Assembly: GCF_006345805.1 (NCBI RefSeq)
Contig: NW_021834079.1
Span: forward strand, 1-26,409
Source of the DNA: Octopus sinensis
Taxonomy: Eukaryota
Direction: 5' to 3'
DNA length: 26,409 bases
Position numbers and translations under genes: made by a program. Shown here piece after piece: positions 2,336-26,409 of this stretch. Below the pieces are notes generated by a model. That model made no database searches. It saw only the letters and a list, made by a program, of their open reading frames with translations, and had not been told where the DNA came from. Position 1 is the stretch's first letter, and every line of letters begins with the position of its first letter.

Positions 2336-3737
2336 TTAGCGCAGGGTAGACCGGTCAACCTGCATCATCGAAGGGTGGACAGGGCGAGGCTCATCAGTGA
2401 AGTAATCATGAGTAAGAGCATCCTGAGCGGAAATACGTTTTTCTGGAGAATAGCGAAAAAAAGAATTGAGCAAATTGAATCCATTCACAGTAAGGTAGTT
2501 CCCAAACCTGTTCCGCAATGAGTTATAGCGATAGTCCGGAATTTTAATCATCTTCACTCCTTCCAACTCGGTGAACCCCGGCCAAATCTTCTCGTTCGGA
2601 GAGCCAAGGTCCTTCAACTACTTGATCAATACAACCTTAAAGATTGCGTGAAGTTGATCAATCTCCGACCTGGAGGTCCAGAGGGGTCTCATGAGCAGCA
2701 ATTCAGCAAACACACAACCAACAGACCACACATCAACCTTTGTCGAATATTTCTTGAATAAAAAACACACACATACCTTGATCCCCAACAACAACTCGGG
2801 AGACCGATACCACAGAGTCACAATGACTGGCGTGTAGTTCTTAAGGGGAGAACCATATTCTCGGGCGGAACCAAAGTCACCCAACTTGAGGACCCCCCGG
2901 TCAGTGATGAGTATGTTTGAAGTCTTAATGTCCCGGTGGAGGATCCAGTTATCGTGCAGGTGGGCCACGGCGGTAAGCAGTTGCCTTAAAATGCACTTGA
3001 CTTCTCCAATCCTAAAGGGTGACTTGCGAGCCTCGATTAGCGACTTTAGGTCACTTTGGACGAAATCCATAACCACGTATATTCGATCCATATGTGACCC
3101 CACCACAATTTCCCGCACTCCCACAATGTTCTCGTGGGGGGCTTTCAACAAAGTAGATACCTCACGAAGAGAGGTTATCGGAAATCCATCCTTTTCATTC
3201 TCCATCTTGAGTCGCTTCAAAGCCACCAACTCGCCCGTGGTTTTGTCACGTGCCTGGAAGACCACTCCGTAACTCCCCTCCTCCACCCGAGACAGGTTTT
3301 CATACTCTTCCACAAACCGACACCCCTGAATTGCCGGGAAATACGACGCGAGTTTTTTTTCTGGGAATTTTTTTTGAGGGACAGCAATCTCTTCGGCAAC
3401 AATCTCTTCAGCAACAATCTCTTCGGGACTGTCCTCGCTGTTGTCGCCCTCTTCCTTTTTTTCTAATCAGATCTAACGATTTAAAAACTATACCAATTTC
3501 AGTCTCGCTCTCTGAGTTTTCAGACAAAGGAATGTCACGGAAAAATCCACGACGCTCAATCCTCATTTGCTTGGCACGGATTACCTTCCTTGCTAACAAT
3601 TCTGCAGAAAAGTCATTTTGTCCGCGTTTCTCTGATTCGGTTTTTAATGAGATTTTATAGTCTAGTTCGTTCTTATTGGATTCAGAGTCTGCCTCGGATA
3701 CTTCTCCATTTTCTAATAAAATCTTGAATTTCGACAT
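2336..3737 (-). CDS. CDK11: Cyclin-dependent kinase 11 (PITSLRE kinase), 4 exons, 440 aa as spliced
   Basis: Exons are 3737-3494, 3462-2777, 2752-2636 and 2611-2336 (1323 nt, open). Introns are 31, 24 and 24 nt. Motifs: YFPAIQGCRFVEEY, EEGSYGVV, GFPITSLRE, HRDIKTSN, DFG, VTLWYRSPELLLG, DLGSPNEKIWPG. Splicing restores LLGIK-KYSTKVD and IFK-DLG. Confidence 0.95.
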
Positions 3738-3831: not shown

Positions 3832-4360
3832 ATAATTTTGAGTCCACTTCTTTTCAACCTCGTCTTGTCGGACATTCCCCTGCCGTCTGTATGTACTGGC
3901 AAGCTTGTCATCTACACTGATGATATCCTGGTTATGGATACCTCGAAAAGGATATCACAGTCTTGGAGACGATTGAAGTCGTACATTGCCGAGTTAAAGA
4001 AGTGGACTGCTGAGAAGGGCTTGACCATAGCCATCGAGAAGAGCACCATTTCATGGACGCGAAGAGGAACACGTTGTGCAGCTACGTATTCCTATGCTAT
4101 GAGTGGTTATGATATGGATCTTTTCAAGAGTTTGAATCTAGACTATTTCGGAGTAATAGTCAACTTCTGTGGTTCGTGCGCCGACCACGTAGCTAAACAG
4201 AGGAAGAAGAGCGTTAGAATCCTCAGAAGCTTAACCAGTTCCATCTGGATCCGGAAACTTACATCTACGTCCACAAAACATGTCTACAGCCAGTCCTCAC
4301 ATATGGCTAGAGTGACTACCTTGTCGAACAGTTGGAAAAAACAAAACGTTTCGGATTGAA
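3832..4360 (+). mobile_element. Decayed non-LTR RT fragment (I/Jockey-group-like), domains 5-7 onward
   Basis: LSPLLFN...LVIYTDDILV (degenerate YADD)...WTAEKGLTIAIEKS...LDYFGV...RILRSLTSSIW. No upstream RT domains are present. Confidence 0.75.
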
Positions 4361-4494: not shown

Positions 4495-5210
4495 TTTGAC
4501 TTGGCCTTAAGACGTGAAAACTACTATAGACAAGAGAAAATAAATATGCAAGCTCTCCACGTGTGTAAAATTAATCGACCCGTTTTTTTCACGAAAACAG
4601 TCCCCTAGAAAATATTAACTTGTTCGGTGTCATTTACATCCTTCGTTTTATCTCAAACTAAGGATCCACTTGACGTGGTCTTAAGATGTAAGACCTGTAA
4701 TAGAAATTAGAAAATAAATATGCGAGATCTCCACGTATGTGGAACCAATCAACATGATTTTTTTAGGGAAACAGTCTCACGTGCTTTTCGACAATATTAA
4801 CTTATCGACCACTTCGACATTTATTCTACCATCAAAAACTAAAGATTCGTGGTACGTCGTCTCAAGATGTGAGACACTCTATAAAAATCAGAAAATAAAT
4901 AGGTCGATTGTTGGGACACACGAGTTGAACTTGAGCATTGATTTTCTGATTTTCGGAGTAGGTCTTAAATCTTAAGACGAAGAATTGTGAAAGCTTAGTT
5001 TAAGATTGTAGAAAAGTCAAACAAGTTAATATAATTGACGATTTTCCTTTAAAAAATCAGGTGGATTGGTTCCAAGCACGTGGAGAACTTCATAATGATA
5101 TCTTAATTTTCATTATATGTCTCACATTTTAAGAAGACGTATTGTGAAGCTTTAGTCTGAAATAATAGGAAGGATGCCGAGAAGAAAGAACAAATTAATA
5201 TAGCGTTTAA
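4495..5210. repeat. Foldback structure built from a degenerate ~175-180 bp subrepeat
   Basis: Forward units carry TTAAGAYGT..GAAAATAAATA..CTCCACGT..AATATTAACTT at ~4508, 4681 and 4862. Inverted units follow 4941. The core inverted pair is AAAATCAGAAAAT (4884-4896) and ATTTTCTGATTTT (4941-4953). Confidence 0.7.
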
Positions 5211-5319: not shown

Positions 5320-5620
5320 GCAATATATTATTATAGGCACTTTTGCGATGCCATGGATCATGACAAAGCTTGTGCAGCACAGGAAACAATAAGAGTAATT
5401 AGTCTATTCCATTTCCCGCGATCTTGGGCAACGTCCCGTAGTGCATCGAGATCGTCCCCGGCTTTCAATTCTTTACGAGCCCTCTTTAGGTCTCTATCCA
5501 GCGTACCTGGGAGAGTATTTCTTGGTCGCCCACAGAAACGATGACCCCCAGCTTCGAAATAGTCTGTCGCGAGCGCTGAGAGCGATGACAGGTGATTTGA
5601 CAGCTGCCAGCATCTGTCAT
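5320..5620 (-). mobile_element. RTE-clade LINE 3' end fragment
   Basis: RFCGRPRNTLPGTLDRDL...DDLDALRDVAQDRGKW is the RTE C-terminus and parallels 11764-11950. It is followed by a GTGCCTATAATAAT 3' tail like the one near 11724. Confidence 0.8.
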
Positions 5621-5654
5621 GATAAATATATAACAAACTTCAAAAAAGAAATTA

Positions 5655-5835
5655 AAGATAGCTAAGTAAATTAAAGGCCTCACGAGACACCCGGCCAGCC
5701 TCGCAAATGGCGAAGCCGTTCCCTCGGATCACAGCAATCGACAGACGTTCCAGGAGCCAAGAAAACTCTCTTGGATCGTGACTAGTCCTTGAAATCCGTC
5801 GACCGAGCGAGCGAAGGAAGCGGAGTGTCTTGGGG
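5655..5835 (-). mobile_element. CRE-clade retroelement 3' end fragment
   Basis: FGPKTLRFLRSLGRRISRTSHDPREFSWLLERLSIAVIRGNG is the CRE/RLE C-terminal helix. About 100 bp are nearly identical to 6476-6575. Confidence 0.8.
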
Positions 5836-5889
5836 CCGAAAAATTATAAATATACATAATTATCATAAATTGATTCACTTTATTAAAAA

Positions 5890-6435: not shown

Positions 6436-6577
6436 TTTTTTTTTTAAACAAGAAAGAAATTAATAAGTTAATTAAAGGCATCACGAGACACCCGGCCAGC
6501 CTCGCGAATGGCGAAGCCGTTCCCTCGGATCACAGCAATCGACAGACGTTCCAGGAGCCAAGAAAACTCTCTTGGGG
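6436..6577 (-). mobile_element. Short CRE 3' retrocopy with poly(A)
   Basis: Near-identical to 5676-5773. It has a T-rich 3' UTR and a T11 run at ~6436-6446, which is a poly(A) on the minus strand. Confidence 0.7.
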
Positions 6578-6749
6578 TTAAGGTTTAACTCTCTTGCCAA
6601 GAAAATTCTTTTTTTGTAACAAATAAATTCATATTTCTTCAAAAAAAATTATCATTTATTAATTGTCAATAATTGACCTTAGTTAACTTTGATGTAATAG
6701 ATTTTTTTTGTTAAAATTTTTTTTATTTAATGGAAATTGTTAAAAAAAT

Positions 6750-8818
6750 CTAGCTATTAAGTACTGGCTCGCAGAATTGAAAGACAATTCCCGCGTAAAA
6801 CAGCCAGCGAGATCCTCTGAATAAGGAATATAAATTTCCTGGGATCTCGGGAGCGATAGTTGCACAGACGGCCAAGTTTCTTAAGGTGAGCAAACGTCTT
6901 GGCCCCCAAAACATAGGAAGTCTCGACGGCAATTGTTCAAAACCTAAATCGGTCGCGCAAATCCTTGTATTTCGTTAATTTCGCGAATTCGGCCTTCTCG
7001 GCCGACGAACCGGGGCGACAAGCCGTGGAATTCAAGGCTTCCTTGGCGAAAGAGTCGGCACACATGACGTCCCAAACGGAGTGAATCCTTATCGAGAACA
7101 GTATCCAAAAGCGGAGAAAAAAGTACATTCAGCCAGGAGCCTGAGTATGGCTGACAGGCGGAACGGAAACAAGACAGTCTGTGTTGGTCGAGTTTTGTCC
7201 CAATCTCGCTGAGAAAAGATATCGGAAGGGACTTCAGAGAAATTTTGTTTCCAAAGTGCAAGGGTCGAATCGATATCAGAGTCCAACGATGATTCAGTAG
7301 TTTTTTCCAGAATCTTTTGGACAAGGAGATATGATCCAGACGCCGAAAAAAGAAAGGCAGGAAGAGCCAAATCAATACTGGAACGGAGGCCCAGACCCCC
7401 GTGACTCAAGGAAGTTTAGCCTGACACCAGGCAATATCGTCGAAATGCACATTAAGAATTTTCTCCGCAGAACTCGAACGAATTTATCATATGATTCCAG
7501 CACTTGCGTGACATAAAAACAAGGAGAGCTCCTCAGGATATAAATAATTTTTGGGATCAAAAGATAATTCTTGCGGATGTAGAATGAAGGATGAGGATCA
7601 ATGATAGAAAGTTTTTCACAAAGAGATGCGATAAGATTTTTTTGGCGAGGAGGATTCGTGTAGCTGAGTCGGCGAGAATCGGTGACCCCAGAATTTCCAG
7701 ATCAGACAGAAGTGTCTGTCTCAACTCAGGAAGGAGTCCACAGAAAAGAGAGAAGAAGTTCTTAAACAGGGATGGCTCAACAGAGAAATTGACAATCTCA
7801 GACTTGCTGGAATTAATGTCGGATAACGCCGAAATTAGAATGGCCAGGTCCTTCAACAAAACACCAGGTGGACCGCCCAGGGTGCAATCGTCGAGATACC
7901 AGAGATTAAGGAGTGATTCATTAACCCGGGCAATGGGATCCACGGCAAGAGCGAAAAGTAATGGTCCCAAAGGATCACCCTGTTGGACGCCACAGGACGA
8001 AGAAATGAAAAAACCGCCGGCGATTAAAAGTGATGGAAGCGAGTACGAAAGTGAGATAAAAGGAAGCAAGTGTGGAACACGGTCTTGACAGACCTCCAAC
8101 AAATAGCCACGGTCCAGAGAATTGAAAGCATTAGTTACATCCAGTTTCAATAAGGCAAGGGGAATATTGGAACGAATAGAAGCGTGAATAAAACAACGAC
8201 AGGCATAGACAAAAGACTCGCAGCCGCCAGGAACACCCACACCCAAATGAATGGGCTGCAGTTGCTCGCCAATAGAAGGGATAACGGACTTGCAACAGAT
8301 TTTCGCAAATAAACGACGAAAGACATTTCCAACAGGAATAGGCCTGATACCACCATCTTTCTTGCCCAAAGCTGTAAGATTCGCGGAAAAGAACAGAATT
8401 CTAGCATGGTCAGAAATTTTGCCGCTTAGAAATAAATTGCACAAGTTAGTGCAAGCATTCAAGAGGTGATTCCCGGTATCACCAGTTGCGGAAATTAAGT
8501 CTCTCAAATGAATAGGGCGGAGACCGTCGATACCTTTGCTACTGTTACCCCTAAAAAAGTTTAAGACGTCCAGAAGTTGTTTGGAAGAAACAGAAAAGGG
8601 AAAACAGGAGGAATGGGCCATATCAAAGGTTACTGGTTTTCTAATAGGGTGCTTTTCCTTGAGAATGCGAGCAACATCGGGGGTGATTGTACGGACAGAA
8701 TCGGAAGATGACAAGAGACGAACAGCCGCGCTGACATCATGCGACATTAGACAGGAGTTAATCAGAGACCGTAAACGTTTAGAAGCGTCCTTCGACGAGA
8801 GCATAGCGGTAGATTTTA
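6750..8818 (-). mobile_element. CRE-clade non-LTR retrotransposon (copy A), 5'-truncated, frameshifted, internally deleted
   Basis: RT ORF 7557..8804 has FFSANLTALGKKDGGIRPI, LDVTNAFNSLDR, GVQQGDPLGPLLF and WYLDD. Later frames give GGLGLRS and QHRLSCFRSACQPYSGSWL, then WDVMCADSF..KAEFAKLTKY..VETS..QRISLAVLRGN. The zinc knuckle and RPDG are missing at ~7090. Confidence 0.92.
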
Positions 8819-9845: not shown

Positions 9846-10110
9846 CTTTATAAGAATGGAATACTCAATTCGATTGAAAGTAGGGAGCATGTTAAAATCG
9901 AATGACTTGAAATTTTAATAATTAAATAAACATTCATTTTTATTTTTTGTTAAATTCACTCTTAGTAAAACAAGCCATCATTAAATTATACAAATTTTTT
10001 GCTTTTGTATTGAAATTTGTTCAATTTTTGAGTATATATTTTAACCATTTTTGTTAAGCTAAAATTAAATTTAAAATAAACGAACATCAATAATAAATTA
10101 CATCAAGAAA

Positions 10111-11210
10111 ATGCGATCATTCTACCACTGGGTGATATTAGCGTGATAATAAACACAGGCATCTATTCTTACAGACGTCGAGATAGTCACCCACTGCAGA
10201 CTAAGTGATTATACAGTCTTCATCCGATTAGTCGACATTATGTAATACTTTTATTTTCACCAGTTGTGACACTACCACCACAAATACGGCACTCATTAAA
10301 AGACAAGAGTACGTGAAAGAATATTTGGAGCATGGTTTGCTCTTTATTCATTTTTCAGTCTTCGAGGATTCCCCTGTGGAATTGGATTGTGTGTTTGACC
10401 TTCTGAGCCACGACGACTGTTTTAGCTTAAATTCTGTATTATATTGTATACTATTCCTTATTTACTCGTATTGCTTTTGACATTACTTCCTTCTTCTGTC
10501 TCCGAGTCAATTTTGTATAAAATTAACGAGAGTCTCTCTCTGTTGAGTATGGAAGATTACACTCTGCTCGGTGGTGTCCTTCCCACCCTTTACGATGAGA
10601 CTGATTCCGTCAAACCCTCGCTTTGGGCCATTGGGGAACTTTGTGTACATCCCTTTCGTTGTTTTTGTATTCATTTTGTAGTTTCTTTGGAGGTGAATGA
10701 GACAGTCGAGTCCAAGGACGACATCTGTCTCCGTGATTTACTCCAATCTGTCATTTCTCGCCGAAATGTACTAATTTTTTGGCCCTTCAAGAAATAGGTG
10801 CAGTTGGAGCAACTTGAAGTGCAGGTAAACGAGAAAGAACGTCAAATAAAGTTGATTTCTCAACAATTGTTAGAAGCACAATCCCGTTTAAGACAAGAAG
10901 GTGGGAAACAATATATTTGTGCATAGAGGACAAAGCCCAACTTCTCTCCTCGCAGTGCAAGCAAAGTGAGATCACGATAGAACAACTCGGAAAAGAGTTG
11001 AAAAATTTAAAGCCGAAAACATTGGAGGTTGATTCCTGCCTTTTGACTGGTCGGAATATTGAATTGCATGAGCGTTGGTGTCAGTTGAAAGAGTTGTGCG
11101 CGGATGCTACCAAAAAATTGAAGGAATGTAAAGAAGAGCATAAACTGTTAGAGAATGCATTCCTGTTCAGGCAACATAAAAAAATAATTAAAAAACAACT
11201 ATTTAATTAG
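10111..11210 (+). CDS. NuMA/Hook-type N-terminal CH domain plus coiled-coil protein, 7 exons, ~315 aa, one unresolved frame break near 10440
   Basis: Introns: 10132-10158 (27), 10242-10263 (22), 10335-10358 (24), 10658-10681 (24), 10768-10797 (30), 10901-10926 (26). Spliced: MRSFYHWASILTDVEIVTHCRLSDYTVFIRLVDIIC...RQEYVKEYLEHVF...YLLVLLLTLL...VQLEQLEVQVNEKERQIKLISQQLLEAQSRLRQEEDK. The N-terminus resembles NuMA (W..LQDCSIFIKIIDRI). Confidence 0.7.
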
Positions 11211-11321
11211 TTGTGCGTCAAATTTTTTTCGGAAGCCAAAAGGCCACAATGGCATCTAGTAGTTCGTCAAATGCGTTGCGCTGTTTAACTCATTTACTTG
11301 TCCTCTCAAAAGAAATGTTTA

Positions 11322-11384
11322 TCGACAATATTAACATGTGTAACCTCCTCTACAACCTTCCTACCATCTCTAACTGAGGATTCA
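11322..11384 (+). repeat. Dispersed partial copy of the ~180-bp foldback subrepeat
   Basis: TCGACAATATTAAC is identical to 4788-4801. CTACCATC..AACT.AGGATTC also matches the 4495-5210 units. Confidence 0.5.
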
Positions 11385-11721
11385 TAATTTTCATCCTAAA
11401 ATTTGAGTCACTAATTTGTGTTCTTTGCCATTAATTTTACAGCAAATATTTCAGTAAAAGAATTGTCAATGATTGATTATATTTCATTGATCCATCTATT
11501 CTTTGAAAATTGAGAACTTTTGGTGAATTTTTTAGCGAATAAATATAACCCTATTTTGTATTTATTTTAGCAGAGACATTTTGGAATTCGTTTTTAATTG
11601 TTTCTACGAGTTCCGCTGGAGAGAAGAAGAGAGAAGGCTCTCCAATTTTGTTATGTAGCTGGTTATATTGTATTTTATTGCACTTTGTATCCTTATTTCA
11701 GCTATCTGGAGCATCACTGAG

Positions 11722-12232
11722 ATATTATTATAGCACATTCCGTAGGGACATAAATAGAAAGAGTTATATTCCTACACGTGCCACACACGATACGGCCTTC
11801 TGTACCAACAATTTCCAACTTCTGCGGTTTTGGGCCAGTATCCGAAGTTCGTCGAGATCATCACAGGTCTTCAGGGTTTTCTTTAAAAGCCTCAAGTCGT
11901 CTTGCAGAACAACCGGTAGGGTTGTTCTGGGTCGTCCTCGAAATTTTACGTCATCTGATAGGAAGTATTCTTGCATGGTCACATAGGAAGGTGAATTTGG
12001 ATCCATCCTCAAGATGTGTCCAAATAGTTTCCAGTGACCATTGACAATATCCCGACTAATTGGCCTCGAGTTGCTGATCTTGTAAATAGTTGAGTTGCTG
12101 ATTTTCTTCGGCCAGTGTAGGCAGTTCAGGGAACGAAGCTGTTTTCTGTGGAAAGAATCAAGGTTCTTTAAATCTGAATCAGAAATGCCCCATGGTGAGG
12201 AATTGTAGAGTAGTACAGGTTTGACGAAAGAT
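11722..12232 (-). mobile_element. RTE-clade LINE 3' segment (~500 bp)
   Basis: FVKPVLLYNSSPW..LDSFHRKQLR..WPKKISN..WKLFGHILRM..GRPRTTL..AQNRRSW, then a GTGCTATAATAAT tail. Confidence 0.9.
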
Positions 12233-13166
12233 AAGAGCATTCTGTTGATAAAAGAACAGATCGACGAAAGAAACCGTGATCTCGAGTTTCCAGTGTCCGG
12301 CGAGATTAGGTCCTTAAGATGTCCTGGTCGCAGCCCGTCTAGACCCGTCCCGCTGCTTGGAGCGAAGGATAAAATTCCGGCTTTAATGTCATCGTCCGAG
12401 ATAAACAATGGCTGAAGAATCCCTGGGAGAGGTGGAATTCGAGAGTCGCTTTGAGCAGCCGGATGTCGATCCAGGAGAGCTTCATGAGTCTCAATTGAAG
12501 GCTTCAGGAATGGACTATCACTGGAGAGCACTCTCAAAGCCGAGTGTATTCCTCCTTCCAATAATTTAGAATGAATAGTCCTCCGTAAATGTATCTCTTC
12601 AGAAAGTGTATCCTTTGGTATCTTTCGATGACTCTTCACAGTAGCCGGTTGTAATGGGGGATCGATCACTGTAAGTTCGGAATCAAACAGGCGTATGTTT
12701 TCTTTGTCGGACGATGAAAAAGATCTACCACGATTCGTAGAACCAGAAGGTAAACCCAAACACAACGGGCAAAACAAAGCAGGCGGATCCAGTAACTGAT
12801 GTCGTTCGATGATAACGAGCTTTCAATGCTGGCTGAAAGGCAGTCGGCAGCGGTTAAACGAGCTCCTCTGGGAATCCCTATGAGGATGTGTCTTGAGGAT
12901 GACCATTTAGAAATCGTGTCAAGTAGGCGTTCGTGATCCAACGGCACAGTGCAAGCAGTTTGATTGAAGGGGGCAGTGCCAGCTGGAAAGCATCGATGAC
13001 AGTCCCAATGGGAAATGTTAGTAAGGGCTTTCTTAGAAACTCCTACGGATGACATGTGAAAGAGCCTTGAGCACGCTGAACAAGTGATCGTTCTCTTTCT
13101 CGTGTTAATTATGTTGCATTTTTCGCACGAATGGCTGTTTTTCTTATTTACCTCATTAATCTTCAT
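12233..13166 (-). mobile_element. CRE-clade element 5' part (copy B) with N-terminal PHD finger, fused in frame to the RTE segment
   Basis: The 13166 ORF reads CEKC..CSAC..FHMSS..WDCHRC, continuing in frame into IPRGARLTAA..SSND..WIRLLCF. After a frameshift it reads SKLLEGGIHSALR..DRHP..GLDGLRPGHLKDLIS..INRML. Confidence 0.88.
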
Positions 13167-13479
13167 TGCACTGACTCTGTGTTGAAAATAGTGATTACAC
13201 TACACCACGTCAAAAAAATTCATATTAATTATTTTACATGTCCCGAACGTGTCTTAATCTGATACAGTGAATACTCGCAAATTCGCTATTTTTGGTCATT
13301 TTTTGCTGATAATTTGAGAATTCACAAATTTCAGAATATAATCAATAATTTTTGAATGTGGTAAAACTGTTTAATAATTTAAAAATAGACAAAATTGACG
13401 TAATTAAAAAAATTAATTTAATTCTTCTTTTCCTAATTTGAGGGAGACCTTCCAATTTGGAATTATTGACATTATAAAC

Positions 13480-14190
13480 TTTGATATCCATTCAGGAAGC
13501 CCGGAATTTTTCAGAATCTCTGAAGGAACGTCATTTAGCGAGGCGTGGCGGGACCTCGACCGGCGCTCCTGCGACACGAGAGAGGGTGGAGCCCTTTAGC
13601 GTCGACTTTGGCTCCACATCGGCATCGGTGGATGCTGCATATGTTGAGGCCAAGCCGAAGGGAGATCCCAATCCTCAGGCAGTCGTCATCCAAAAAAGTT
13701 CCTGTTGATGTAGATGGGTAGGCGCCGAGCCATGCATCGCTGTGAGGATGTGCGGCCGAGAGTAGGCACGCTAGCCGGTGTTGGTCTAGCTCTGGTTTCA
13801 TCTTCCAAAACGAGTCGGCGGCCCAGATTTCATCCCATTCCCGTTGCACGGACATGTCGAACGGAAGAAGTAGGTTAGCGTCAGTCCAGAATTCCAGGAG
13901 TCGGCGGTCGGCAACTCCAGAGAGAGTTCGTTGAAGGGGAGTAGAACCACTAGGACGAGTTGCCGGCTTCTGGAAATTGAAGAGAAATGTGCATGTGGAG
14001 CCAGATCTTTCGGCGAGCGAAGACCGATCCCTCCGAACCTGACGGGAAGTTTTGCTTGAGTCCAACCGATTTCGTCAAAGGAAATGTTCAAAACTGCTCC
14101 GTGCAGGATTTCAATGATTTTTCCAAGTAAGACAGAATGTCTGGATGCGAGTAGCATGGCAGGCAGTGGAGCGTGTACAGAATTTTCGAC
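13480..14190 (-). mobile_element. Internal CRE fragment (post-RT region and zinc knuckle)
   Basis: QAKLPVRFGGIGLRS, QHRLACLLSAAHPHSDAWL, CRCGAKVDAKGLHPLSCRRSAGR. Both ends are truncated. Confidence 0.88.
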
Positions 14191-14299
14191 ATATGTAATT
14201 GAGATTATGAAATAAATTGAGTAATAATTTGCTTAAAAAAAATTTGCACGTTGCACGTTGTTGTTGTGGTGCACTTTTTCAGTATATTTGTCAACCTAT

Positions 14300-14472
14300 C
14301 TTATCTTTTTCTTTCATTTTATCTCTCCATTTATCATTTCTTTTTCTTTCATTTTATTTGTCCTTCTATCTCTTCCATTTCTTTATTTCATTTTTCTTTC
14401 TTCTGAACTTCTTTCTTCTTTCTTTTCTATTTCTTTTTTATACATTTCCATCTTTCTTTTCTATTTCTTTCC
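14300..14472 (+). repeat. Polypyrimidine low-complexity tract (TTTC/TTC-like)
   Basis: About 170 nt made almost entirely of T and C, ending just before ATG 14477. Confidence 0.85.
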
Positions 14473-14476
14473 TACG

Positions 14477-17188
14477 ATGGCTATTTGCTCTTCATGCAAA
14501 ACTAGCAACGATCGGAAGAAAGGTAGATACTGTTCTGGCTGCAACAGTTTCTTCCACCTTTCGTGTGTTCGACTTTCCAGGCGCGTTTCAGCTTCTCTCA
14601 TAACCTGGAACTGCCCTGTTTGTCGTTCTTGTTCCCCGTTCGGCCAACAGTCCGCCGGAAATCCCTGCTGAAAGTCCATCTCCGTCAGCCGAAGATGCTT
14701 TAAGATTCATCTATTCTTCTCGCTGTAACCGCCAAATTCCGGCACGGATACCGAAGGCAGCGAGGATTCAAGCTGCTCTCTCTTTGTCCACAGCTATAAA
14801 CCGAGCTTTGTCATCTAATGACCAGTCTGACTGGTTACTCCTTTTTGGTTTTGCTGTTTTCGGTATTGGGATCCAACCCTCCCGGCCCGACAGCGAGTCT
14901 AAAAAACTTTCTCCCGCATCGATTATTAAACAGCAACTCGCCCTATTCGATCATTGTACTTCTCTGTTTCCCTCCCAGTTCGATTCCCTCCACTCTGACT
15001 CTCACAAATGTGTCGCCCCTTCTGTGGTTAACACTAAAACTTCCTCCGATTGCATTTACCTCCGTCGTAAGGTGAACAGCAAGCTGTTGGACGGCGACGT
15101 CCGCGGAGCTGTCAGACTTGTTGCCTCCTCTAACCGGCTTTTGTCCCCATCTCCTTCCGCATTGTCTAATTTGAGATCCAAGCACCCCAGTCCTCCAGTA
15201 AACTCCCGCACCCAACCCGCTGTCGATACGACCGCCCTTCCGCAACTGCTGGTTACCGCTTCACAGGTTGAGAAGGCACTGAAAAGTTTTTCCCCAAGCA
15301 GCAGTGGGGGTATAGATGGGCTGAAGCCCGGACACATTAAAGACTTGACTTCACCTCTTACTGCTGAGGCAGGCCGTCTCCTCTTGGAATCTATCACCAA
15401 TCTCTGTAACCGTCTTATCGGTGGGAATTTACCGGATTTTGCCCGGGCGATTTTCTTCTCGGCTAATCTCACTGCTTTGGGTAAAAAAGATAACGGGGTC
15501 AGGCCGATCGCCGTGGGTAATGTTTTCCGCAGATTGGCCGGAAAGCTCGTTTGCCACGTTGTGATCCCCGAGTTGGTCCCGAAATTTTTGCCAGTCCAAT
15601 TGGGCGTCGGCGTCAGTGGAGGGTGTGAATCGGCTGCCCATGCCGTAAGAGAACTTATGGATTCTTCATTGGAATATCTTTTAGTTAAACTGGACATATC
15701 AAATGCGTTTAACACAGTGAGACGGGATCATTTGCTCGAGACCTGCCTTTCTCTCGCCCCCTCCGCTTATCCTCTGGTCCACCTTTCGTACTCACAACCC
15801 AGCCTCCTCCTGTTTGGCGATTCCTTTATCGTCTCATCGACCGGAGTGCAACAGGGAGATCCCCTGGGGCCTTTCCTATTTGCTATGTGTGTCAACTCCG
15901 TCGCTCATTCTGTCCGCTCTCCGGTAAATATCTGGTACTTGGACGACGCGACGATTTGTGGACCTCCCCGCTCTGTCTTAGACGACCTGCGGAGCATTAT
16001 CCCGGCCCTTTCATCCATCGGTCTGGAGATAAACTCAAGCAAGTCCGAAGTCCTAAACCTGAATATTCCTTCCGATTTTTTGCCGAAACTCTGGACGCCC
16101 TGGAACCTATTCTAAAAGGCGCGCGGGTATCAGAAACAAAGGACCTTGTAATCCTTGGTTCGCCAATTGGTCACGAGGCCCTCTCACAAACGCTCATCGC
16201 CAAGGCAAGCAATCTGTCAAACATGATCGAACGGCTTTCCCTCATTGATGCCCACGTCGGGTTCTTTCTTCTGCGTAACTATTTCTCAACTCCGAGGCTT
16301 TTGTACACCCTAAGGAGTTCTCCTTGTTTTCGCATGCCTAATCTGTTATCCGATATCGATTCTATCTTGAAGTCTGGAGCCGAGTATCTGTGCAACATCC
16401 ATTTCGACGCTCTGGGGTGGCTTCAATCTTCCCTGCCTGTTAATCTCGGGGGGATTGGCCTTCGTTCGCCCGTTTATCTGGCTCTTCCTGCCTTCCTCTC
16501 GTCCCTGGCATCATCCCGTGCCCTCACTGACATCGTTCTCAGAAACCTTCCCGAACGAAAAATGTCAGTTGATCACGTGGCCGCTCTGGACCTTTGGGAT
16601 TCATTGTACAACAAAAGACCCAGTGACCCGTGTATCCAAGCTCAATGGGATGCCATTTCTTGTGAAGCTCTTGACGTACATCTACGCAAAAATTTCGATC
16701 AGCACAGACTTGCATGTCTCCGCGCAGGCTGCTGCACAGGGAGTGGGGCCTGGCTGGATGCTCTCCCTGTCCCTTCCACCGGTAACCTACTAGACAAAGA
16801 TTGCCTACGAATTGGTTTATCATTGCGTCTTGGATTGGAAATCTGCGAAATACACAAATGTCGTTGTGGTGCTGTCATTGACCGTTTTGGTCTACATCCC
16901 CTTTCCTGTCGTCGCAGTGCAGGGCGCGCACCACGCCATGCAGCACTTAACGACGTTATTCAGAGGGGGCTCACGGCCGCTGGGATTCCATCAATCCTCG
17001 AACCCGTCGGGCTTGCGAGGGGAGACGGAAAAAGACCCGACGGCCTATCGGACTTTCCCGTTTGAGTTCGGCAAGTCTCTGTTATGGGATGCGACGTGTT
17101 CAGACACTTTCTCGGAGCTCAACCTTCCTTCTTCAGCTGTCGAGCCTGGCTCAGTCTCTCGCAAAACCGAGAAGATGAAGATTGGAAA
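14477..17188 (+). mobile_element. Near full-length CRE-clade retrotransposon (copy C): PHD - RT - zinc knuckle - RLE, 3' end cut by satellite
   Basis: From ATG 14477: CSSC..CSGC..FHLSC..WNCPVC (C4HC3). Frameshifts occur near 14660, 16085 and 17045. Motifs: GVQQGDPLGPFLF, WYLDD, CRCGAVIDRFGLHPLSC, RGDGKRPDG, LLWDATCSDT. The last ~60 codons and the tail are absent. Confidence 0.93.
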
Positions 17189-20100
17189 GATTTTGTAATA
17201 AATTATGTGACATATTATGCAATTTGGGAAGGTAGCAGGATGTGAGGATTTAGGGGTACTTGAGATTATGTAATTAATTGCGCAATATATACAACAATTT
17301 AGAGAGGTCTCTAGATGTGTGAATAAGTGGGTACTAGAGATTATGTAATAAATTGCCTAATATATTACGTAATTTTTAGAGGTCCCTATATGTAAAGATA
17401 TATGGGTTCTTGAGATTATGTACTAAATTGCGTTATATACTTTCCAATTTGGAGATGTTTCTAAATTTTAGGTTATGGGGGTACTTAATATATATCATAA
17501 ATTGAGTAACATTTATATTATCAATTTGGGGAGGTGCAGGATGTAAGGATATGGGGTTCTTGAAATTATGTAATAAATTGCGTAAAATATGAATTTCCAA
17601 AGTTTTCCAGGATGTAAGGATCTATGGGTTCTTGAGATTATTTAAAGATTTCGTTATGTATTTTCATTTGGAGAGGTCTCTAAATGTTTGGATATGGGGG
17701 TACTTGAGATTTTGAAATAAATTATGTAACATATTATGCAATTTGGGAAGGTGCCAGGATGTGATGATTTAGGGGTACTTGAGATTATGTAATTAATTGC
17801 GTAATATATACTACAATCAAGAGAGGTCTCTAGATGTGTGAACAAGTGGGTAATTGAGATTATGTAATAAATTGCCTAATATATTACGTAATTTTTGGAG
17901 GTCCCTATATTTAAAGATATATGGGTTCTTGAGATTATGTACTAAATTGTGTTATATACTTTCCAATTTGGAGAGGTTTCTAAATTTTAGGATATGGAGG
18001 TACTTGAGATTAAATCATAAATTGAGTAAAATTTATATTATGCAATTTGGGGAGGTGTCAGGATGTGAGGATTTAGGGGTACTTGAGATTATGTAATTAA
18101 TTGCGTAATAAATTGCGTAAAATATGAAATTTGGAGAGGTCCCACGATGTGAGGATATATGGGTTCTTGAGATTATTTAATTTATTGCGTTATATATTTT
18201 CAATTGGAGAGGTCCCTAAATGTTGGGATATGGGGGTACTTGAGATTTTGTAATAAATTATGTAACATATTATGCAATTTGGGAAGGTGCCAGGATGTGA
18301 GGATTTAGGGGTACTTGAGATTATGTAATTAATTGCGTAATATATACTACAATTAAGAGAGTTCTCTAGATGTGTGAATAATGTGGGTACTTGAGATTAT
18401 GTAATAAATTGCCTAATATTACGTAATTTTTGGAGGTCCCTATATGTAAAGATATATGGGTTCTTGAGATTATTACTAAATTGCGTTATATACTTTCCAA
18501 TTTGGAGATGTTTCTAAATTTTAGGATATGGGGGTACTTGAGATTATATCATAAATTGAGTAACATTTATATTATGCAATTGGGGAGGTGTCAGGATGTG
18601 AGGATTTAGGGGTACTTGAGATTATGTATTAATTGCGTAAAATTGCGTAAAATATAATTTTGGAGATTTCCAGGATGTGAGGATATATTGGTTCTTGAGA
18701 TTATTTAATAATTGCGTTTATTATTTTCAATTGGAGAGGTCCCTAAATGTTGGGATATGGGGTACTTGAAATTTTGTAATAAATTATGTAACATATTATG
18801 CAATTTGGGAGAGGTGTCCAGGATGTGAGGATTTAGGGGTACTTGAGATTATGTAATAATTGCGTAATATCAACTACAATTTAAGAGGTCTCTAGATGTG
18901 TGAATAAGTGGGTACTTGAGATTATGTACTAAATTTGTTATATACTTCCAATTTAGAGAGGTTCTTAATTTTAGGATATGGGGGTACTGAGATTATATCA
19001 TAAATTGAGTAACATTTATATTATGCAATTTGGTGAGGTTGCAGGATGTAAGGATATGGGGTTCTTGAAATTATGTAATAATTGCGTAAAATTTAATTTT
19101 GGAGAATTTCCAGATGTGAGGATATATTGGTTCTTGAGATTATTTAATAGATTGCGTTATATATTTTCATTTGGAGAGGTCTCAAATGTTGGGATATGGG
19201 GTTACTTAAGATTTTGTAATAAATTATGTAATATTATGCAATTTGGGAGGTGCCAGGATGTGAGGATTTAGGGGTACTTGAGATTATGTAATTAATTGCG
19301 TAATATATACTACAATTAAGAGAGGTCTCTAGATGTGTGAATAAGTGGGTACTTGAGATTATGTAATAAATTGCCTAATATATTACGTAATTTTTGGAGG
19401 TCCCTATATGTAAAGATATATGGGTTCTTGAGATTATGTACTAAATTGCGTTATATACTTTCCAATTTATAGAGGTTTCTTAATTTTAGGATGGGGGGGT
19501 ACATGAGATTATATCATAAATTGAGTAACATTTATATTATGCAATATGGTGAGGTTGCAGGATGTAAGGATATGGGGGTTCTTGAAATTATGTAATAAAT
19601 TGTGTAAAATTTGAATTTTGGAGAATTTCCAGGATGTGAGGATATATTGGTTTTGAGATTATTTAATAGATTGCGTTATATATTTTCAATTGGAGAGGTC
19701 CCTAAATGTTGGGATATGGAGGTACTTGAAATTTGTAATAAATTATGTAACATATTATGCAATTGGGAGAGGTGTCAGGATGTGAGGATTTAGGGGTACT
19801 TGAGATTATGTAATTAATTGCGTAATATCAACTACAATTTAAGAGGTCTCTAGATGTGTGAATAAGTGGGTACTTGAGATTATGTACTAAATTGTGTTAT
19901 ATACTTTCCAATTTAGAGAGGTTTCTTAATTTTAGGATATGGGGGTATTGAGATTATATCATAAATTGAATAACATTTATATTATGCAATATGGTGAGGT
20001 TGCAGGATGTAAGGATATGGGGGTTCTTGAAATTATGTAATAAATTGCGTAAAATTTGAATTTTGGAGAATTTCCAGGATGTGAGGATATATTGGTTCTT

Positions 20101-21186
20101 GAGATTATTTAATAGATTGCGTTATATATTTTCATTTGGAGAGATCTCTAAATGTTGGGATATGGGGTTACTTAAGATTTTGTAATAAATTATGTAACAT
20201 ATTATGCAATTTGGGGAGGTGCCAGGATGTGAGGATTTAGGGGTACTTGAGATTATGTAATTAATTGCGTAATATATACTACAATTAAGAGAGGTCTCTA
20301 TGTGTGAATATGTGGGTACTTTAGATTATGTAATAAATGCCTAATATATTACGTAATTTTTGAGGTCCCTATATGTAAAGATATATGGGTTCTTGAGATT
20401 ATGTACTAAATTGCGTTATATACTTTCCAATTTGGAGATGTTTCTAAATTTTATGATATGGGGGTACTTGAGATTATATCATAAATTGAGTGAGTAACAT
20501 TTATATTATGCAATTAGGGGAGGTGTCAGGATGTGAGGATTTAGGTTTTCTTTAGCCTATGTAATAATTTGCGTAATAAATTGCTTAAAATATGAAATTT
20601 CCAGAGGTCCCAGGATGTGAGGATATATGGGTTCTTGAGATTATTTAAACAATTTCGTTATGTATTTTCATTTGGAGAGGTCTCTAAATGTTTGGATATG
20701 GGGGTACTTGAGATTTTGAAATAAATTATGTAACATATTATGCAATTTGGGAAGGTGCCAGGATGTGATGATTTAGGGGTACTTGAGATTATGTAATTAA
20801 TTGCGTAATATATACTACAATTAAGAGAGGTCTTTAGATGTGTGAAAAAGTGCGTAATTGAGATTATGTAATAAATTGCCTAATATATTACGTAATTTTT
20901 GGAGGTCCCTATATGTAAAGATATATGGGTTCTTGAGATTATGTACTAAATTGCGTTATATACTTTCCAATTTGGAGATGTTTCTAAATTTTAGGTTATG
21001 GGGGGTACTTAATATTGTATCATAAATTGAGTAACATATATATTATCCATTTGGGGAGGTGTCAGGATGTGAGGATTTAGGGGTACTTGAGATTATGTAA
21101 TTAATTGCGTAACAAATTGCGTAAAATATGAATTTTGGAGAGTTTCCAGGATGTGAGGATATATTGGTTCTTGAGATTATTTAATA
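17189..21186. repeat. Higher-order satellite of ~75-bp monomers (7 types, A-G)
   Basis: Monomer starts at 17189, 17264, 17339 and 17414 are 75 bp apart. Type-A monomers start at 17189, 17708, 18244, ~18770, 19210, ~19730, 20176 and 20712, giving units of 519, 536, 526, 440, 520, 446 and 536 bp. Confidence 0.95.
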
Positions 21187-21648
21187 TGTCGCGAGCGCAG
21201 CGAGCGACCACTCAATTTCTAGATCCGATCAATCAAAAAATCTATAAATTGACAAATACCCAGGCTTGTATTTGGGATTAAATATATTCGATAACAAAAA
21301 TTAAAATCGATGCCAAAGCAGAATGAGCTTTAAAACCGATTTCATAAATAAAAATAATATTTTAAAATTTATAATTGATATTTTAGAATAATGAGAAAAA
21401 ATCTAAATGCTTCATAATTTATTAAAAATGTCAAAACAAGAATCTTCTGAAGGAGCAAGCCTGTCTGCACAGTTCATTTTTGATTAGAAGACCTAATTTT
21501 AGAGATTAAAACGAAAAAATAGCAATGAGATCTGTCAAATTATTACCCCCCTCACAACCAAACCAAATTAGCGTTCAGTATTCATTGATTTTACTTTTCT
21601 ATTAAGGTCTAATTATAAATTATTTTATGGGATTCAATGGAAAACTTA

Positions 21649-21683
<35 letters not shown>

Positions 21684-22977
21684 TTAGGGTCAAACTACTA
21701 AGTAAAGTCAACAAACTAATAAATTCTCCCAGCGAGACGGAGGGAACAGCTGTTGCCACGCATGACAGCCAGCAGGATCCTCTGAATGGGAAAGTAAATT
21801 CCTAGGGTCCTTGACGCGAAAGAACAAAGATGTCCCAATTTCTTTAGGGAAGTGAGGGTCCCGGAGCAAAGACGCCGGAAGTCTCGACAACGATTGGCCA
21901 AAACCAAAAGTCATCCATCAAAGACTGATATTTCCGGCACTTCGAAAGCTCAGCCTTATTAGCACGAGACCCAGCAAGAGAGGCCGATTCGTTGATGAAA
22001 GACTTTGAGAAGGTATCCACACAAGTGGAATCCCAGACCAAAGGTCTCCCAGAATAAAACGAGAACAACGTAGAGCCGTCCGGCCTTTTCCCGTCACCAC
22101 GGTCGAGACCCTTAGGCTCAAGGACAGAAGGGTAGCCGGCCTTTTCGAGTGAGTCGAGAATGATTCTGTTAATCGCCGAATGGCGTGGAATACGACCGCG
22201 CTTTTCTTGCAGGAGAGGGCATGGAGCCCGTATACGTCCATAGTAGATCCGCACCGGCAGGGGTGGGGACTACAGATCGGAAGTCCGAGGCGGAGGCAAA
22301 TGCCAAAACGGAGGGCGTCGGAGTCAAGACAGGTGTCCAAATGGGTCGAAGGAAGGCAGTTAAGCCAAGAGCCAGAATGCGGTTGGCGGCTGGCACGGTA
22401 ACAAGCCAGTCTGTGCTGGTTCAGGAGAGCCTCCAACGAGTCCGCATGATGCTTACTAAGAATTTTATCCCATTCACGTTGGAGGGACCTATCAGAAGGG
22501 AACTCAAGCCCTTTTTCCTTCCAAAGCAAAGTGCAGAATTAATATCAGAGTCCAAACGAGATCCGGGCGATTTTCAAGAATCTTATGGACAAGAAGATAC
22601 ATCCTGAAGACGATGAAAGGAAAGCGGGAAGAGAAATGTCGAGAGCCGAGCGGAGCCCAAGCCCACCAAAAGGAACAGGAAGTTTGGCCTGACGCCAACC
22701 GACATCATCGAACTTGACGTTAAAAATAATCTCGGCTGAAGAACGCACCAGAGCGTCAAAAGACTCAAAGCAGAGGGAACAGAAAAGCAACAGGAACTCC
22801 TTAGGACATAATTGATCCTCGGAATCAAAAGAAAGTTTTTGAGGATAAAAAAAGCGGGATGGGATCGATGTCCACAAGTTTATCACAAAGAGAAGCAAGA
22901 GCATTTCTCTTGGAATCGAGAATACGAGAGACCGATTGGTGGTGGATCGGGGCACCCAGGATTTCAAGTTCAGAATA

Positions 22978-24916
22978 TGTCACGAGCCTAGTCGTTACGA
23001 GCTAGGTCGTGACATTTCGCTTATGTTTCTATAAAGATTAAAAATTAATTATCGCTGAGCCTAATAAAATTATTCTTAATATTTAAAATTAATCTTATTA
23101 ATTAAAACAAAATATCCGGATAATTATACATCCGTAATTGTAATATACATATAAACGCGTGTTTTTTCTGTGTTACCTATGTCGCGTTCTTTTGTAAAAG
23201 ATATGGATGAGTATCGATTGCTTGAAAAAGTTTTAACTGGACAAAATATTGAAAATCAATCGAGGCAAAAAGTTTACTCCCTTAAAAAGAAAGCTGAAAA
23301 GTTCATTTTAATCAATGGAAGAATATACCTTAAACAGCCGTGTGGAAATCACAAATTAGTGATTTCGACGGACAACGTTGACGAGATGAAATTGGTGGCT
23401 AGCCAAATTCATCTCGTTTCGCATTGTGGACATAACACTCTTGAGAACATGTGCCATGAAAGATATTTCACTGTAAAACGACAAATAATCCGAAAAATTG
23501 TTGCCGATTGTGAAATTTGCAAATTTTCAACTCCCTTGAAAGTAGGGGGGAAGAGAAAATCATGTGATTGCAATCGTCCCAATGAAAAATTCCAGATGGA
23601 CTTAATTGATCTGAAGAGGTATCAATTTTTGTATTATATAATAAAGATTTAAACAAACAAATGAAACTATAGCAGGCTTAACGGCTTTTAACGGTTATTG
23701 ACGTCTACTCGAAGTTCGCATTCACTCGAAACTAAAACATAAAGCGGAATTGACGTTGCTGAAAATCTCAAAAAAATTTTTCTACGTTTGGACGTGTCCA
23801 TATTTGCAATCGGATAATGAAACTGAATTCAAAAATCCACATGTGACTGCATGTGTGAATCTTTCAACATTCAACAGATACACAGTAGGCCAAACAATCC
23901 CAGAAGTCAAGGATCATCGAGCGTTTTAACCAAACGGTTACCAGGTCGCTATCTAAAATGATGGCTAATGATGAAGATAAGTGTGGACGAAGTATATAGA
24001 TTGAAGCTGTTTATTTTAATTAAAGTAAACATTCTTCTACTGGTTTTCTTAAAAATTATTCATTTTAGGAGATTCCCCATTTCATAGATATCGTGGGATT
24101 AGAGGATCGAACAACTTCATTCCTGAAAAGACATGAGATGAAGAGTGACAATTCAGATGGTTAGTTAAAATTCGCAATATATAGAATAGATTCGAAAAAC
24201 ATAGAATTTTCTTTCAACTTTCCGCACACCGATGTGACATCTCCATATTCCAAAAAAATGAACCAGGAGAAGGGGTGTTCATCGGTCAAAATATTCATTT
24301 AATTGGAGATAAGGTAAAACTCAAATTATTCTAAATTGTAGATAAGGATCAAAAAGGATTATGGTACCAATCCTTCACTGCACTCAAAAAATTGAAAGTC
24401 CATACGGAGAAGTTTGTACAATAACTGAAATCCTGCGCATAATATGGTCAGAGTTCAAATGGATGAGGGAACTACTAAGAAGACACTCATGAAAAGAATT
24501 AAAAAAATTTAAATAACATAATTGATTGTTTTGTTAATAAAAAAATTCAAAACCTAATTAGCAGAGAAACATTCATGACCGAACATTCAAATAGACAAAA
24601 TTTCGAATAAAAATACATTTTCTGCGTATTTTTCTAATTTAAAGCATTTTGAATTTTCTTATTTGAAAAAAATAGCAATTCATAAATTAAAATATTATTT
24701 TAGTTCGGGAATCGTTTTTAAAGCACGGTCTAGTTGGCAATTTTTTAAATTCTATCATCGAAAAATATTGGCATCCAATTCCATTTTTAGTATTTGTCAT
24801 TTTATAATATTTATTTGACAAAGTCGATTTGAAATTGAATTCAAATATTTTTTGAATTTTTTTTCTAAGTCCATAAGGTAACGACCTAGGCTCGGTAACG
24901 ACCTAGGCTCGTGACA
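22978..24916 (+). mobile_element. Ginger2/TDD-type DNA transposon, 1939 bp
   Basis: ~37-39 bp TIRs TGTCACGAGCCTAG(G)TCGTTAC.. lie at 22978-23014 and 24878-24916. The 5-bp TSD GAATA lies at 22973-22977 and 24917-24921. It encodes a retroviral-type integrase and has no RT, RNase H or LTRs. Confidence 0.92.
23179..24512 (+). pseudogene. Ginger2 DDE integrase/transposase with four micro-introns and several frameshifts
   Basis: HHCC finger (HLVSHCG..CEIC), D1 in QMDLID, LTVIDVYSKF, D2 in QSDN, and E in IERFN 35 residues later after repairing two 1-nt shifts. Also HSSTG|DSPF and GDK|IRIKKDY. Introns: 23619-23646 (28), 24043-24068 (26), 24160-24189 (30), 24314-24341 (28). Confidence 0.85.
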
Positions 24917-25761
24917 GAATAAGAGGTCTGCCTCAGATCGGGCAAGAGGCCACGAAACTGGGCAAAAAGGTCTTCGAAGGTGAGGTCTTCGACGTTAAGA
25001 TTAACGATTTCAGATTTTAGAGAATTGATTTCAAGAACAATAGATGACAACGCCGGGGAGTAGAGATTGCAAGTCGTTTAGCAAAATGTCGGGCGGACCA
25101 CCAATAGTACAGTCGTCCAAATACCAAATATTAAGAGGGGGACGCAATCCTGCGGGCGACAAAGTCCACGAGAGGGCAAATAATAAAGGACCAAGGATCG
25201 CCTTGCTGTACGCCACAGGAAGACGAAAGAAAGAATCGCAGCAACCAAGAGGCTCGGGTTTACCATAAGAAAGAAAAAATGAAGGGGCAGCAGCAGAGAA
25301 GGAAATTCTGGCACCTTGCAAACCTCAAGAAGATGCTTTCTATTGAGCGAATTGAAAGCGTTCTTCACATCCAATTTAATAATAACTGGGGCCGCTCTGA
25401 GAGACGAGCCGATTCAATGAAAACACGGGCAGGTGGACCGAGGCCTCGCACCCACCAGGTACCCCCACACCCAACTGAATGGGCTGGAGTCGTCGCTAAT
25501 AGGAGGAATTACAAGCTTGCATCCGACCTTTGCAAACAAGCGACGAAAAACGTTTCCCGACGGCAATAGGTCTGATGCCGCCGTCTTCTCCCCAAAGCAG
25601 ACAGGTTCGCAGAGAAGAAAAAATTGAAAACTTAAGTTATTTCAATTTTAATTTAAAATCATGTTAAAATTTAAAATAATTAATAAATATATTTGTTGAT
25701 GATAGGCTTGTTAGGTGTCAAAGTTGCGTCTAGCGCTCGGTCGCGCGCTGCGCTCGCGACA

Positions 25762-26409
25762 TAATAGATTGAGTTATATATTTTCCAATGGAGAGGTCCT
25801 GAAATGTTGGGATATGGAGCTACGTCTTGAAATTTTTGTAAAAATTATCTGTAACATATTATGCAATTTGGGAGATAGAGGGTGTCGGATGTGGGGGATT
25901 TAAGGGTACTTGAGATTATGTAATAAATTGCGTAAATCAACTACAATTTAAGAGGTCTCAGATGTGTGAATAAGGGGGTAGTTGAGATGTGTAATAAATG
26001 CCATAATATATTACGTAATTTTTGGAGGTCCTATATGTAAAGATATATGGGTTCTTGAGATTATGTACTAAATTGTGTTATATACTTCTCCAATTTAGAG
26101 AGGTTTCTTAATTTTAGGACATGGGGGGTTGGTAATTGAGATTATATCATAATTGAGTAAATTTATATTATGCAATATGGTGAGTTTGCAGAATGTAAGG
26201 ATATGGGGGTGGGTACTAATTAAAATTATGTAATAAATTGCGTAAAATTTGAATTTGGAGAATTTCCAGGATGGAGGATATATTGGTTCTGAGATTATTT
26301 AATAGATTGCGTTATATTTTCAATTGGAGAGGGTCCCTAAATGTTGGAGATATGGAGGTTACTTGAAATTTTTGTAATTAAATTATGTCCATATATGCAA
26401 TTTGTGAGA
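25762..26409. repeat. Continuation of the ~75-bp higher-order satellite to the window end
   Basis: Resumes in register within monomer G, then A-B-C-D-E-F-G-A, with more small indels than the left block. Confidence 0.9.

Follow-up and report, generated by a model that had tools for sequence, protein, structure and literature searches.

A 26,409-nt window of assembled Octopus sinensis sequence (the whole stretch of DNA analysed, to which all coordinates refer unless a comparison locus is named) holds at 21182-25766 a nest in which a satellite array contains a miniature inverted-repeat transposable element (MITE), the MITE contains a CRE-II retrotransposon, and the retrotransposon contains a Ginger2-type DNA transposon. 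The anatomy of the nest and the family assignments are demonstrated by its sequence, the insertion order is certain, and three successive insertions (MITE into satellite, CRE-II into MITE, Ginger2 into CRE) are in our judgement the very probable origin of the arrangement. Boundaries were set by script, and the parts are as follows, with strand where one applies.

17187-21181: left-hand satellite array, with a unit of 75 bp and a higher-order period of ~446 bp (TRF; self-BLAST map)
21182-21186: target-site duplication TAATA, left copy, satellite sequence
21187-21639, + strand: left part of the MITE, with terminal inverted repeat TGTCGCGAGCGCAGCGAGCGACC at 21187-21209
21640-21650: target-site duplication GAAAACTTAAG, left copy, MITE sequence
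21651-21682, - strand: A32 tail of the CRE-II element (T32 on the + strand)
21683-22972, - strand: 3' part of the CRE-II element, with linker, CCHC, restriction-like endonuclease motifs and 3' untranslated region
22973-22977: target-site duplication GAATA, left copy, CRE sequence
22978-24916, + strand: compact Ginger2-type DNA transposon, 1939 bp
24917-24921: target-site duplication GAATA, right copy
24922-25619, - strand: 5' part of the CRE-II element, with reverse transcriptase motifs, truncated within the reverse transcriptase region
25620-25625, - strand: six extra bases, AAAATT (+ strand), at the CRE 5' junction
25626-25636: target-site duplication GAAAACTTAAG, right copy
25637-25761, + strand: right part of the MITE, with terminal inverted repeat at 25739-25761
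25762-25766: target-site duplication TAATA, right copy
25767-26409: satellite array right of the nest (self-BLAST map; rejoined-flank alignments)

Target-site duplications and host restoration

The original prediction held that three identical pairs of target-site duplications mark six junctions, and all were located exactly where it had placed them. The outermost pair, TAATA (21182-21186 and 25762-25766), stands at both limits of the nest, so that the predicted span is exact, from duplication to duplication. The 11-bp pair GAAAACTTAAG (21640-21650 and 25626-25636) has no further occurrence in the 26.4-kb window, and the innermost pair is GAATA (22973-22977 and 24917-24921). If two bases match with a probability of 0.277, each 5-mer pair would arise by chance with a probability of 1.6e-3, the 11-mer pair with one of 7e-7, and all three pairs together with one of ~2e-12; a chance origin of the duplications was rejected on these computed probabilities. 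An extension of the 11-bp duplication to 15 bp (AAT[G/T]GAAAACTTAAG) was also rejected, being not separable from chance. The poly(A) tail, predicted to be uninterrupted, is a pure run of 32 bases, seen as T32 at 21651-21682.

Rejoined with a single TAATA, the satellite flanks align without gaps across the junction with eight in-register monomers; identity is ~90% in the top two full-length alignments (~230 bp), and at the rejoined junction four of these monomers have precisely the sequence TTTAATAGATTG. From base 7 as far as its tail, the rejoined CRE (2031 nt) aligns with a continuous copy on O. sinensis contig VCDQ01001009.1 (hereafter L001; 6829-8847), in which the Ginger2 target site GAATA occurs once, empty. 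When the two CRE pieces are aligned separately, they overlap on L001 by the duplicated site alone, and the reading frame is unbroken across the Ginger2 junction relative to a paralogous protein of the window (...LRQTSYSELEILG...). The claim that each host sequence rejoins exactly thus stands for the satellite, in register, and for the CRE, against L001; for the MITE it is judged from the hallmarks of the insertion. Junctions, duplications and host restoration together confirm the predicted nesting order of satellite, MITE, CRE and Ginger2.

CRE-II retrotransposon

The clade of the retrotransposon was assigned by BLASTP ranking against reference sequences from the alignment supplement of PMC5678591. 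The best reference was Cre-1_BM (LINE/CRE-II, a group of long interspersed nuclear elements, LINEs; E = 2e-92, 37% identity over 506 aa), followed by SLACS (4e-14), CRE2 (4e-11), Cre-1_HM (1e-9) and CRE1 (4e-5), and the R2, Dong, R4, HERO, NeSL and Utopia references all had E-values of at least 3e-4. The predicted label "CRE" is therefore correct in the Repbase sense (CRE-II). Dong-R4 and HERO are listed in the octopus literature as the abundant endonuclease-bearing LINEs (PMC13282606; PMC8967140), and one survey reports CRE types in cephalopods. A Dong/R4 or HERO identity was considered on that account, and was ruled out by the reference ranking.

A frame-stitched translation of the nested CRE found its best matches among O. 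sinensis proteins (57% over 94% of the query; 81% over 48%) and, after these, matched many proteins of Lepidoptera, including a Bombyx protein (P0072) that is 99.4% identical to Cre-1_BM. Related full-length database proteins possess a PHD finger, reverse transcriptase, CCHC and restriction-like endonuclease, with the PHD finger N-terminal in P0002 and P0019; PHD-like motifs were recognised by eye in two other CRE copies of the window. A search of PDB returned weak matches to the R2 and L1 reverse transcriptases, and Pfam searches of the raw three-frame translations were near-empty because the frames are broken. In the nested copy, the reverse transcriptase YLDD motif lies at 25097-25132, and the minus strand encodes a CCHC motif (CRCGSTMDVYGLHALSC; 22209-22259) and the PD...D/E...K series of the restriction-like endonuclease, represented by GKRPDG (RPDG at 22063-22092), WDSTCVD (22009-22038) and K-CRKY (K at 21928-21954). 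The CCHC and endonuclease motifs were found by eye and by paralogue alignment, not by profile.

The L001 copy is full-length (~3.15 kb) and is flanked by a 9-bp duplication, TGTAACAAT. By comparison with it, the nested CRE is 5'-truncated, with ~1.1 kb missing and ~2.0 kb left; having neither the PHD finger nor the beginning of the reverse transcriptase, it was dead on arrival. The hallmarks of target-primed reverse transcription are present, namely the A32 tail, the 11-bp duplication and the 5' truncation. The bases AAAATT at 25620-25625 have no counterpart in the L001 copy or in the duplication; filler bases at LINE 5' junctions are common. A copy of another CRE family, at the O. sinensis locus L003, is flanked by a ~7-bp duplication (AAGATAG), so that the targets of the three octopus copies are unrelated, AT-rich sequences, with duplications of 7-11 bp.

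The nested element resembles Cre-1_BM of Bombyx mori in its layout of reverse transcriptase, linker, CCHC and restriction-like endonuclease, although the two belong to hosts of different phyla and their similarity is at the level of the family group only. With the trypanosomatid elements CRE1, CRE2, SLACS and CZAR, the octopus CRE shares clade membership by reverse transcriptase similarity, the restriction-like endonuclease and target-primed reverse transcription. However, the trypanosomatid elements insert specifically into spliced-leader RNA genes, and the octopus copies do not; site-specific insertion of the kind known from the founding CRE elements is absent from the three octopus copies.

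Ginger2-type element

The innermost element (22978-24916, 1939 bp) has the ends TGTCAC...GTGACA and inverted repeats of ~40 bp (22978-23016 and 24875-24916), each composed of two 17-bp subrepeats; the two arms are identical save for three 1-nt gaps, all of them homopolymer contractions. An integrase-like coding sequence at 23179-24512 (+), with several frame breaks as assembled, contains the HHCC motif (23410-23526) and the catalytic residues D (23685-23723), D (23804-23836) and E (23913-23939). The match to Pfam Integrase_H2C2 is weak (E = 0.014); homologues carry rve (PF00665). The whole 1.94 kb consists of one integrase gene and the ends, and is devoid of reverse transcriptase, RNase H and long terminal repeats. 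From the first methionine to the C-terminus, the gene is collinear with integrase-only proteins of 420-458 aa (rve, H2C2), which indicates that the 1.94-kb element is structurally full length.

Ginger2 elements are recognised by TGTNR ends, inverted repeats of ~40-50 bp, an integrase with HHCC and DDE motifs, and AT-rich targets (PMC2836005), and Ginger2/TDD elements duplicate 4 or 5 bp of target, with TDD-4/5 making 5 bp (PMC10045372). The octopus element has TGTNR ends, a 5-bp AT-rich duplication and the HHCC and DDE motifs, and on these structural grounds the predicted name Ginger2 is retained. The YPYY and GPY/F motifs are a mark of Ginger1 that Ginger2 lacks; in the octopus copy, the C-terminal part of the coding sequence is frame-broken. 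One homologue is automatically annotated as SCAND3-like, an indirect hint only; according to a statement in PMC3575427, SCAND3 derives from Ginger2. Known Ginger2/TDD elements (Ginger2-1_NV with its derivative Ginger2-1N1_NV; TDD-4) are like the octopus elements in their integrase transposase, their ends and their short non-autonomous derivatives. They differ in that the listed autonomous elements measure 2.75-6.7 kb (PMC2836005), whereas the octopus elements measure 1.6-1.9 kb, and in that the first-described metazoan Ginger2 families make 4-bp duplications, whereas those of the octopus elements are 5 bp.

An independent element at the O. sinensis locus L006 (12306-13908; 1603 bp) has 47-bp inverted repeats, the ends TGTCGCGCGC/TGTCACGCGC (TGTCGCG/TGTCACG) and the duplication ATTAT, and its integrase is 39% identical to that of the window. 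Compact Ginger2-type elements with 5-bp duplications are thus a feature of the genus. In the databases, the closest relatives of the window integrase are proteins of microsporidia (Dictyocoela and Nosema granulosis; P0121-P0138), which are 46-50% identical to it. That these relatives are closer than the L006 element could be a lead on horizontal transfer or just a sampling effect.

MITE

The outer element occupies 21187-25761 including its guests and has 589 bp of its own sequence, bounded by terminal inverted repeats in which 22 of 23 bases match. It has no coding capacity: the longest open reading frame (ORF) that overlaps it is 48 aa, and begins in the flanking satellite. Its inverted repeat, TGTCGCGAGCGCAGCG(A/C)GCGACC, has 15 of 23 bases in common with the end of the window Ginger2 element, as is apparent when the ends of the MITE (TGTCGCGAGC), the window Ginger2 element (TGTCACGAGC) and the L006 element (TGTCGCGCGC) are compared; all three made 5-bp duplications. 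Internally, MITE positions 21233-21427 match, in inverted orientation, the 3' subterminal region of the Ginger2 element (24629-24818) over ~200 bp at 72% similarity, with a bit score of 68.9 against 26.7 +/- 2.6 for shuffled sequences (~16 standard deviations above). By these likenesses, the MITE is a non-autonomous Ginger2-type element; they point to a related family rather than to its direct parent. The Ginger2-type nature of the MITE is a point that the original prediction did not contain. A scan of metagenomes with the MITE inverted repeat gave no hits. A solo motif at 5565-5590, TGTCGCGAGCGCTGAGAGCGATGAC, resembles the MITE inverted repeat, but no inverted counterpart lies near it; the resemblance may be due to chance, or the motif may be what is left of another Ginger2-type element.

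Age of the layers

The nested CRE differs from the L001 copy by 8 substitutions in ~1960 aligned bases (0.41%), which points to a young CRE insertion; the later Ginger2 insertion is then also young, and necessarily younger. We infer the youth of both inner layers from this divergence, since the identical duplications and the pure tail are weak clocks by themselves: by calculation, their 54 unchanged bases bound the CRE divergence to no more than ~5%. Of the predicted recency of three insertions, the comparison with L001 bears out that of the two inner ones, the CRE and the Ginger2 element.

Related copies and satellite remnants

Other CRE-type copies occur in the window. The one at 14268-17189 has a complete 5' end and is 99.1% identical to L003 (14484-17403); where the satellite begins it stops short, with the final ~250 bp and the poly(A) tail missing, so that a deletion or rearrangement followed its insertion. 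It stands head-to-head with a minus-strand copy (~11764-14190), itself being on the plus strand, and a 37-bp island of the nest's satellite family lies between the two at 14195-14231. This island indicates that the array formerly extended further left and was invaded there too; the island and the array edge at 17187 both flank additional CRE-II copies. A further CRE-type copy at 6733-8806 (-) is 88-89% identical to the O. sinensis locus L002, and has a 415-aa ORF; the 3' part of this copy is frame-broken. The L006 locus carries, besides the Ginger2-like element at 12306-13908, a CRE-like gene (10001-11614) and the satellite family (21160-21578; 70-73% identity).

Origin of the nest

The parsimonious reading, and the one we infer, is that all three events took place at the nest locus. 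As reconstructed from the junctions, the 589-bp MITE would have been cut and pasted into the TAATA of one satellite monomer, duplicating 5 bp. A CRE-II element would then have entered the MITE by target-primed reverse transcription: a strand nick after ...CTTAAG would have left a 3'-OH to prime cDNA synthesis on the poly(A) tail, a second nick 11 bp away would have given rise to the 11-bp duplication, and synthesis would have ended early, leaving a 2.0-kb copy of a ~3.15-kb element with six filler bases at its 5' junction. Finally, the 1.94-kb Ginger2-type transposon would have integrated at a GAATA of the dead CRE, between the reverse transcriptase and endonuclease regions, with duplication of 5 bp.

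Several points weigh against three separate insertions at the nest. A search of the window and of six O. sinensis loci (~120 kb) brought up no independent copy of the MITE, so that its restoration is read from the 11-bp duplication together with the tail and 5' truncation of the CRE. The alignment of the nested CRE with L001 contains 33 indel events, of which 30 are single-base and 27 lie in homopolymers. Most of them are private to the window, given that the L001 copy has only ~2 frameshifts, and the excess is local to the nest, given that the neighbouring and equally young copy at 14268-17189 has just 10 gap columns in 2926 bp. The likeliest cause is consensus error, perhaps from low or half coverage, and an unusual mutation pattern in the nest is the alternative; in consequence, the length of the tail and the coding status of the nest, including its broken frames, are unreliable. 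To these points is added the mobilisation of a composite, in which either the MITE acquired one or both guests elsewhere and the 4.6-kb unit was pasted into the satellite by a Ginger2-type transposase, or a CRE transcript already bearing Ginger2 was retrotransposed. Either variant would leave fewer than three events at the nest, and we regard the two jointly as quite unlikely.

The near-intact inverted repeats of the MITE (22/23) and its perfect duplication are compatible with such a composite, the inner duplications would have travelled inside the unit, and size would have been no barrier, since autonomous Ginger2 elements of 2.7-6.7 kb are mobile (PMC2836005). However, there is no second copy of the composite in the window or the six O. 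sinensis loci, the Ginger2 site is empty in the related L001 CRE copy, and a CRE RNA split by Ginger2 between the reverse transcriptase and endonuclease regions would be unable to provide its protein in cis and would depend on that of another copy; a composite also requires extra steps. The same indel excess could be taken as a sign of mis-joined repeats in a noisy long-read assembly, some of the junctions then being unreal, and the differences between the Ginger2 arms are likewise all 1-nt contractions. Yet mis-joins would give neither family-appropriate duplications nor exact restoration of hosts, and the joint probability computed for the three duplication pairs makes an artefact highly improbable. 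An empty allele was sought with a CDK11-like ORF (2618-3313) as orthologue anchor and was not found, no octopus protein standing among the 120 best matches listed; look-ups of identical proteins for four ORFs of the window also gave nothing, and so led to no allelic contig. Successive insertion at the nest locus remains the reading that we prefer.

The original prediction went further, and proposed that these families favour the satellite domain. CRE-II copies do lie beside the satellite remnants of 14195-14231 and the edge of the array at 17187, and one of these copies matches its O. sinensis counterpart at 99%; at L006, a span of 12 kb takes in a CRE-like and a Ginger2-like element as well as the nest's satellite family. 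The co-occurrence of CRE, Ginger2 and satellite at two loci is real. Against active targeting, the MITE alone landed in satellite, the CRE and Ginger2 elements having landed in transposon DNA; the other targets of the CRE family (TGTAACAAT; AAGATAG) are unrelated; the Ginger2-type targets (TAATA, GAATA, ATTAT) are AT-rich 5-mers that are common genome-wide; and the two loci are anecdotal. Passive accumulation in low-constraint DNA accounts for the pattern equally well, and we consider active targeting doubtful. Simultaneous activity of DNA transposons and retrotransposons had also been proposed. The interleaving that it implies is present (a Ginger2-type MITE, a CRE, then Ginger2), and an overlap of the families in time does not follow from it.

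Other features of the window

The CDK11-like (PITSLRE) kinase ORF at 2618-3313 (-) encodes 231 aa and is almost intronless. Its closest match is at 69% (gastropods), with no octopus protein among the 120 best matches listed; it is possibly a retrocopy, or else a diverged paralogue that has not been annotated. A 173-aa ORF at 3838-4359 (+) has reverse transcriptase motifs (SPLLFN..., YTDDILV) of a different LINE family. Imperfect inverted repeats are clustered at 4550-5201, with arms of 47-111 nt that are 71-83% complementary; they suggest that a short repeat family is present there in tandem or inverted copies. A repeat of ~100-190 bp beginning ATCACGAGACACCCGGCCAGCCTCGC... occurs at 5652-5840 and ~6480-6580, and at 94% in L006 (16067-16256); it probably represents a family like the short interspersed nuclear elements.

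Implications

The nest is a clean, ordinary nested insertion formed by new members of known families. In nested transposons of satellite and heterochromatin generally, the layers give relative ages and guests gather under weak selection, and the octopus nest does not differ materially from these. There is a small chance, rather speculative at present, that the nest is very young and possibly polymorphic, and that a compact (1.6-1.9 kb), uncharacterised Ginger2 lineage and its MITEs are currently active in octopus. A young, polymorphic nest would explain the consensus indel excess by the half coverage of a heterozygous insertion, and for an active compact lineage the closeness of its transposase to those of amphipod-infecting microsporidia (46-50% identity, versus 39% to L006) would hint at horizontal transfer.

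As resolved here, the nest provides a firm relative chronology, in which Ginger2-type transposition took place both before and after a young CRE-II retrotransposition (0.41%). A catalogue of recently active transposon families in Octopus vulgaris lists no Ginger or CRE (PMC13282606). If genome-wide data agree, two superfamilies would be added to the recently mobile elements of octopus, and nests of this kind would supply dated markers for the colonisation of satellite arrays.

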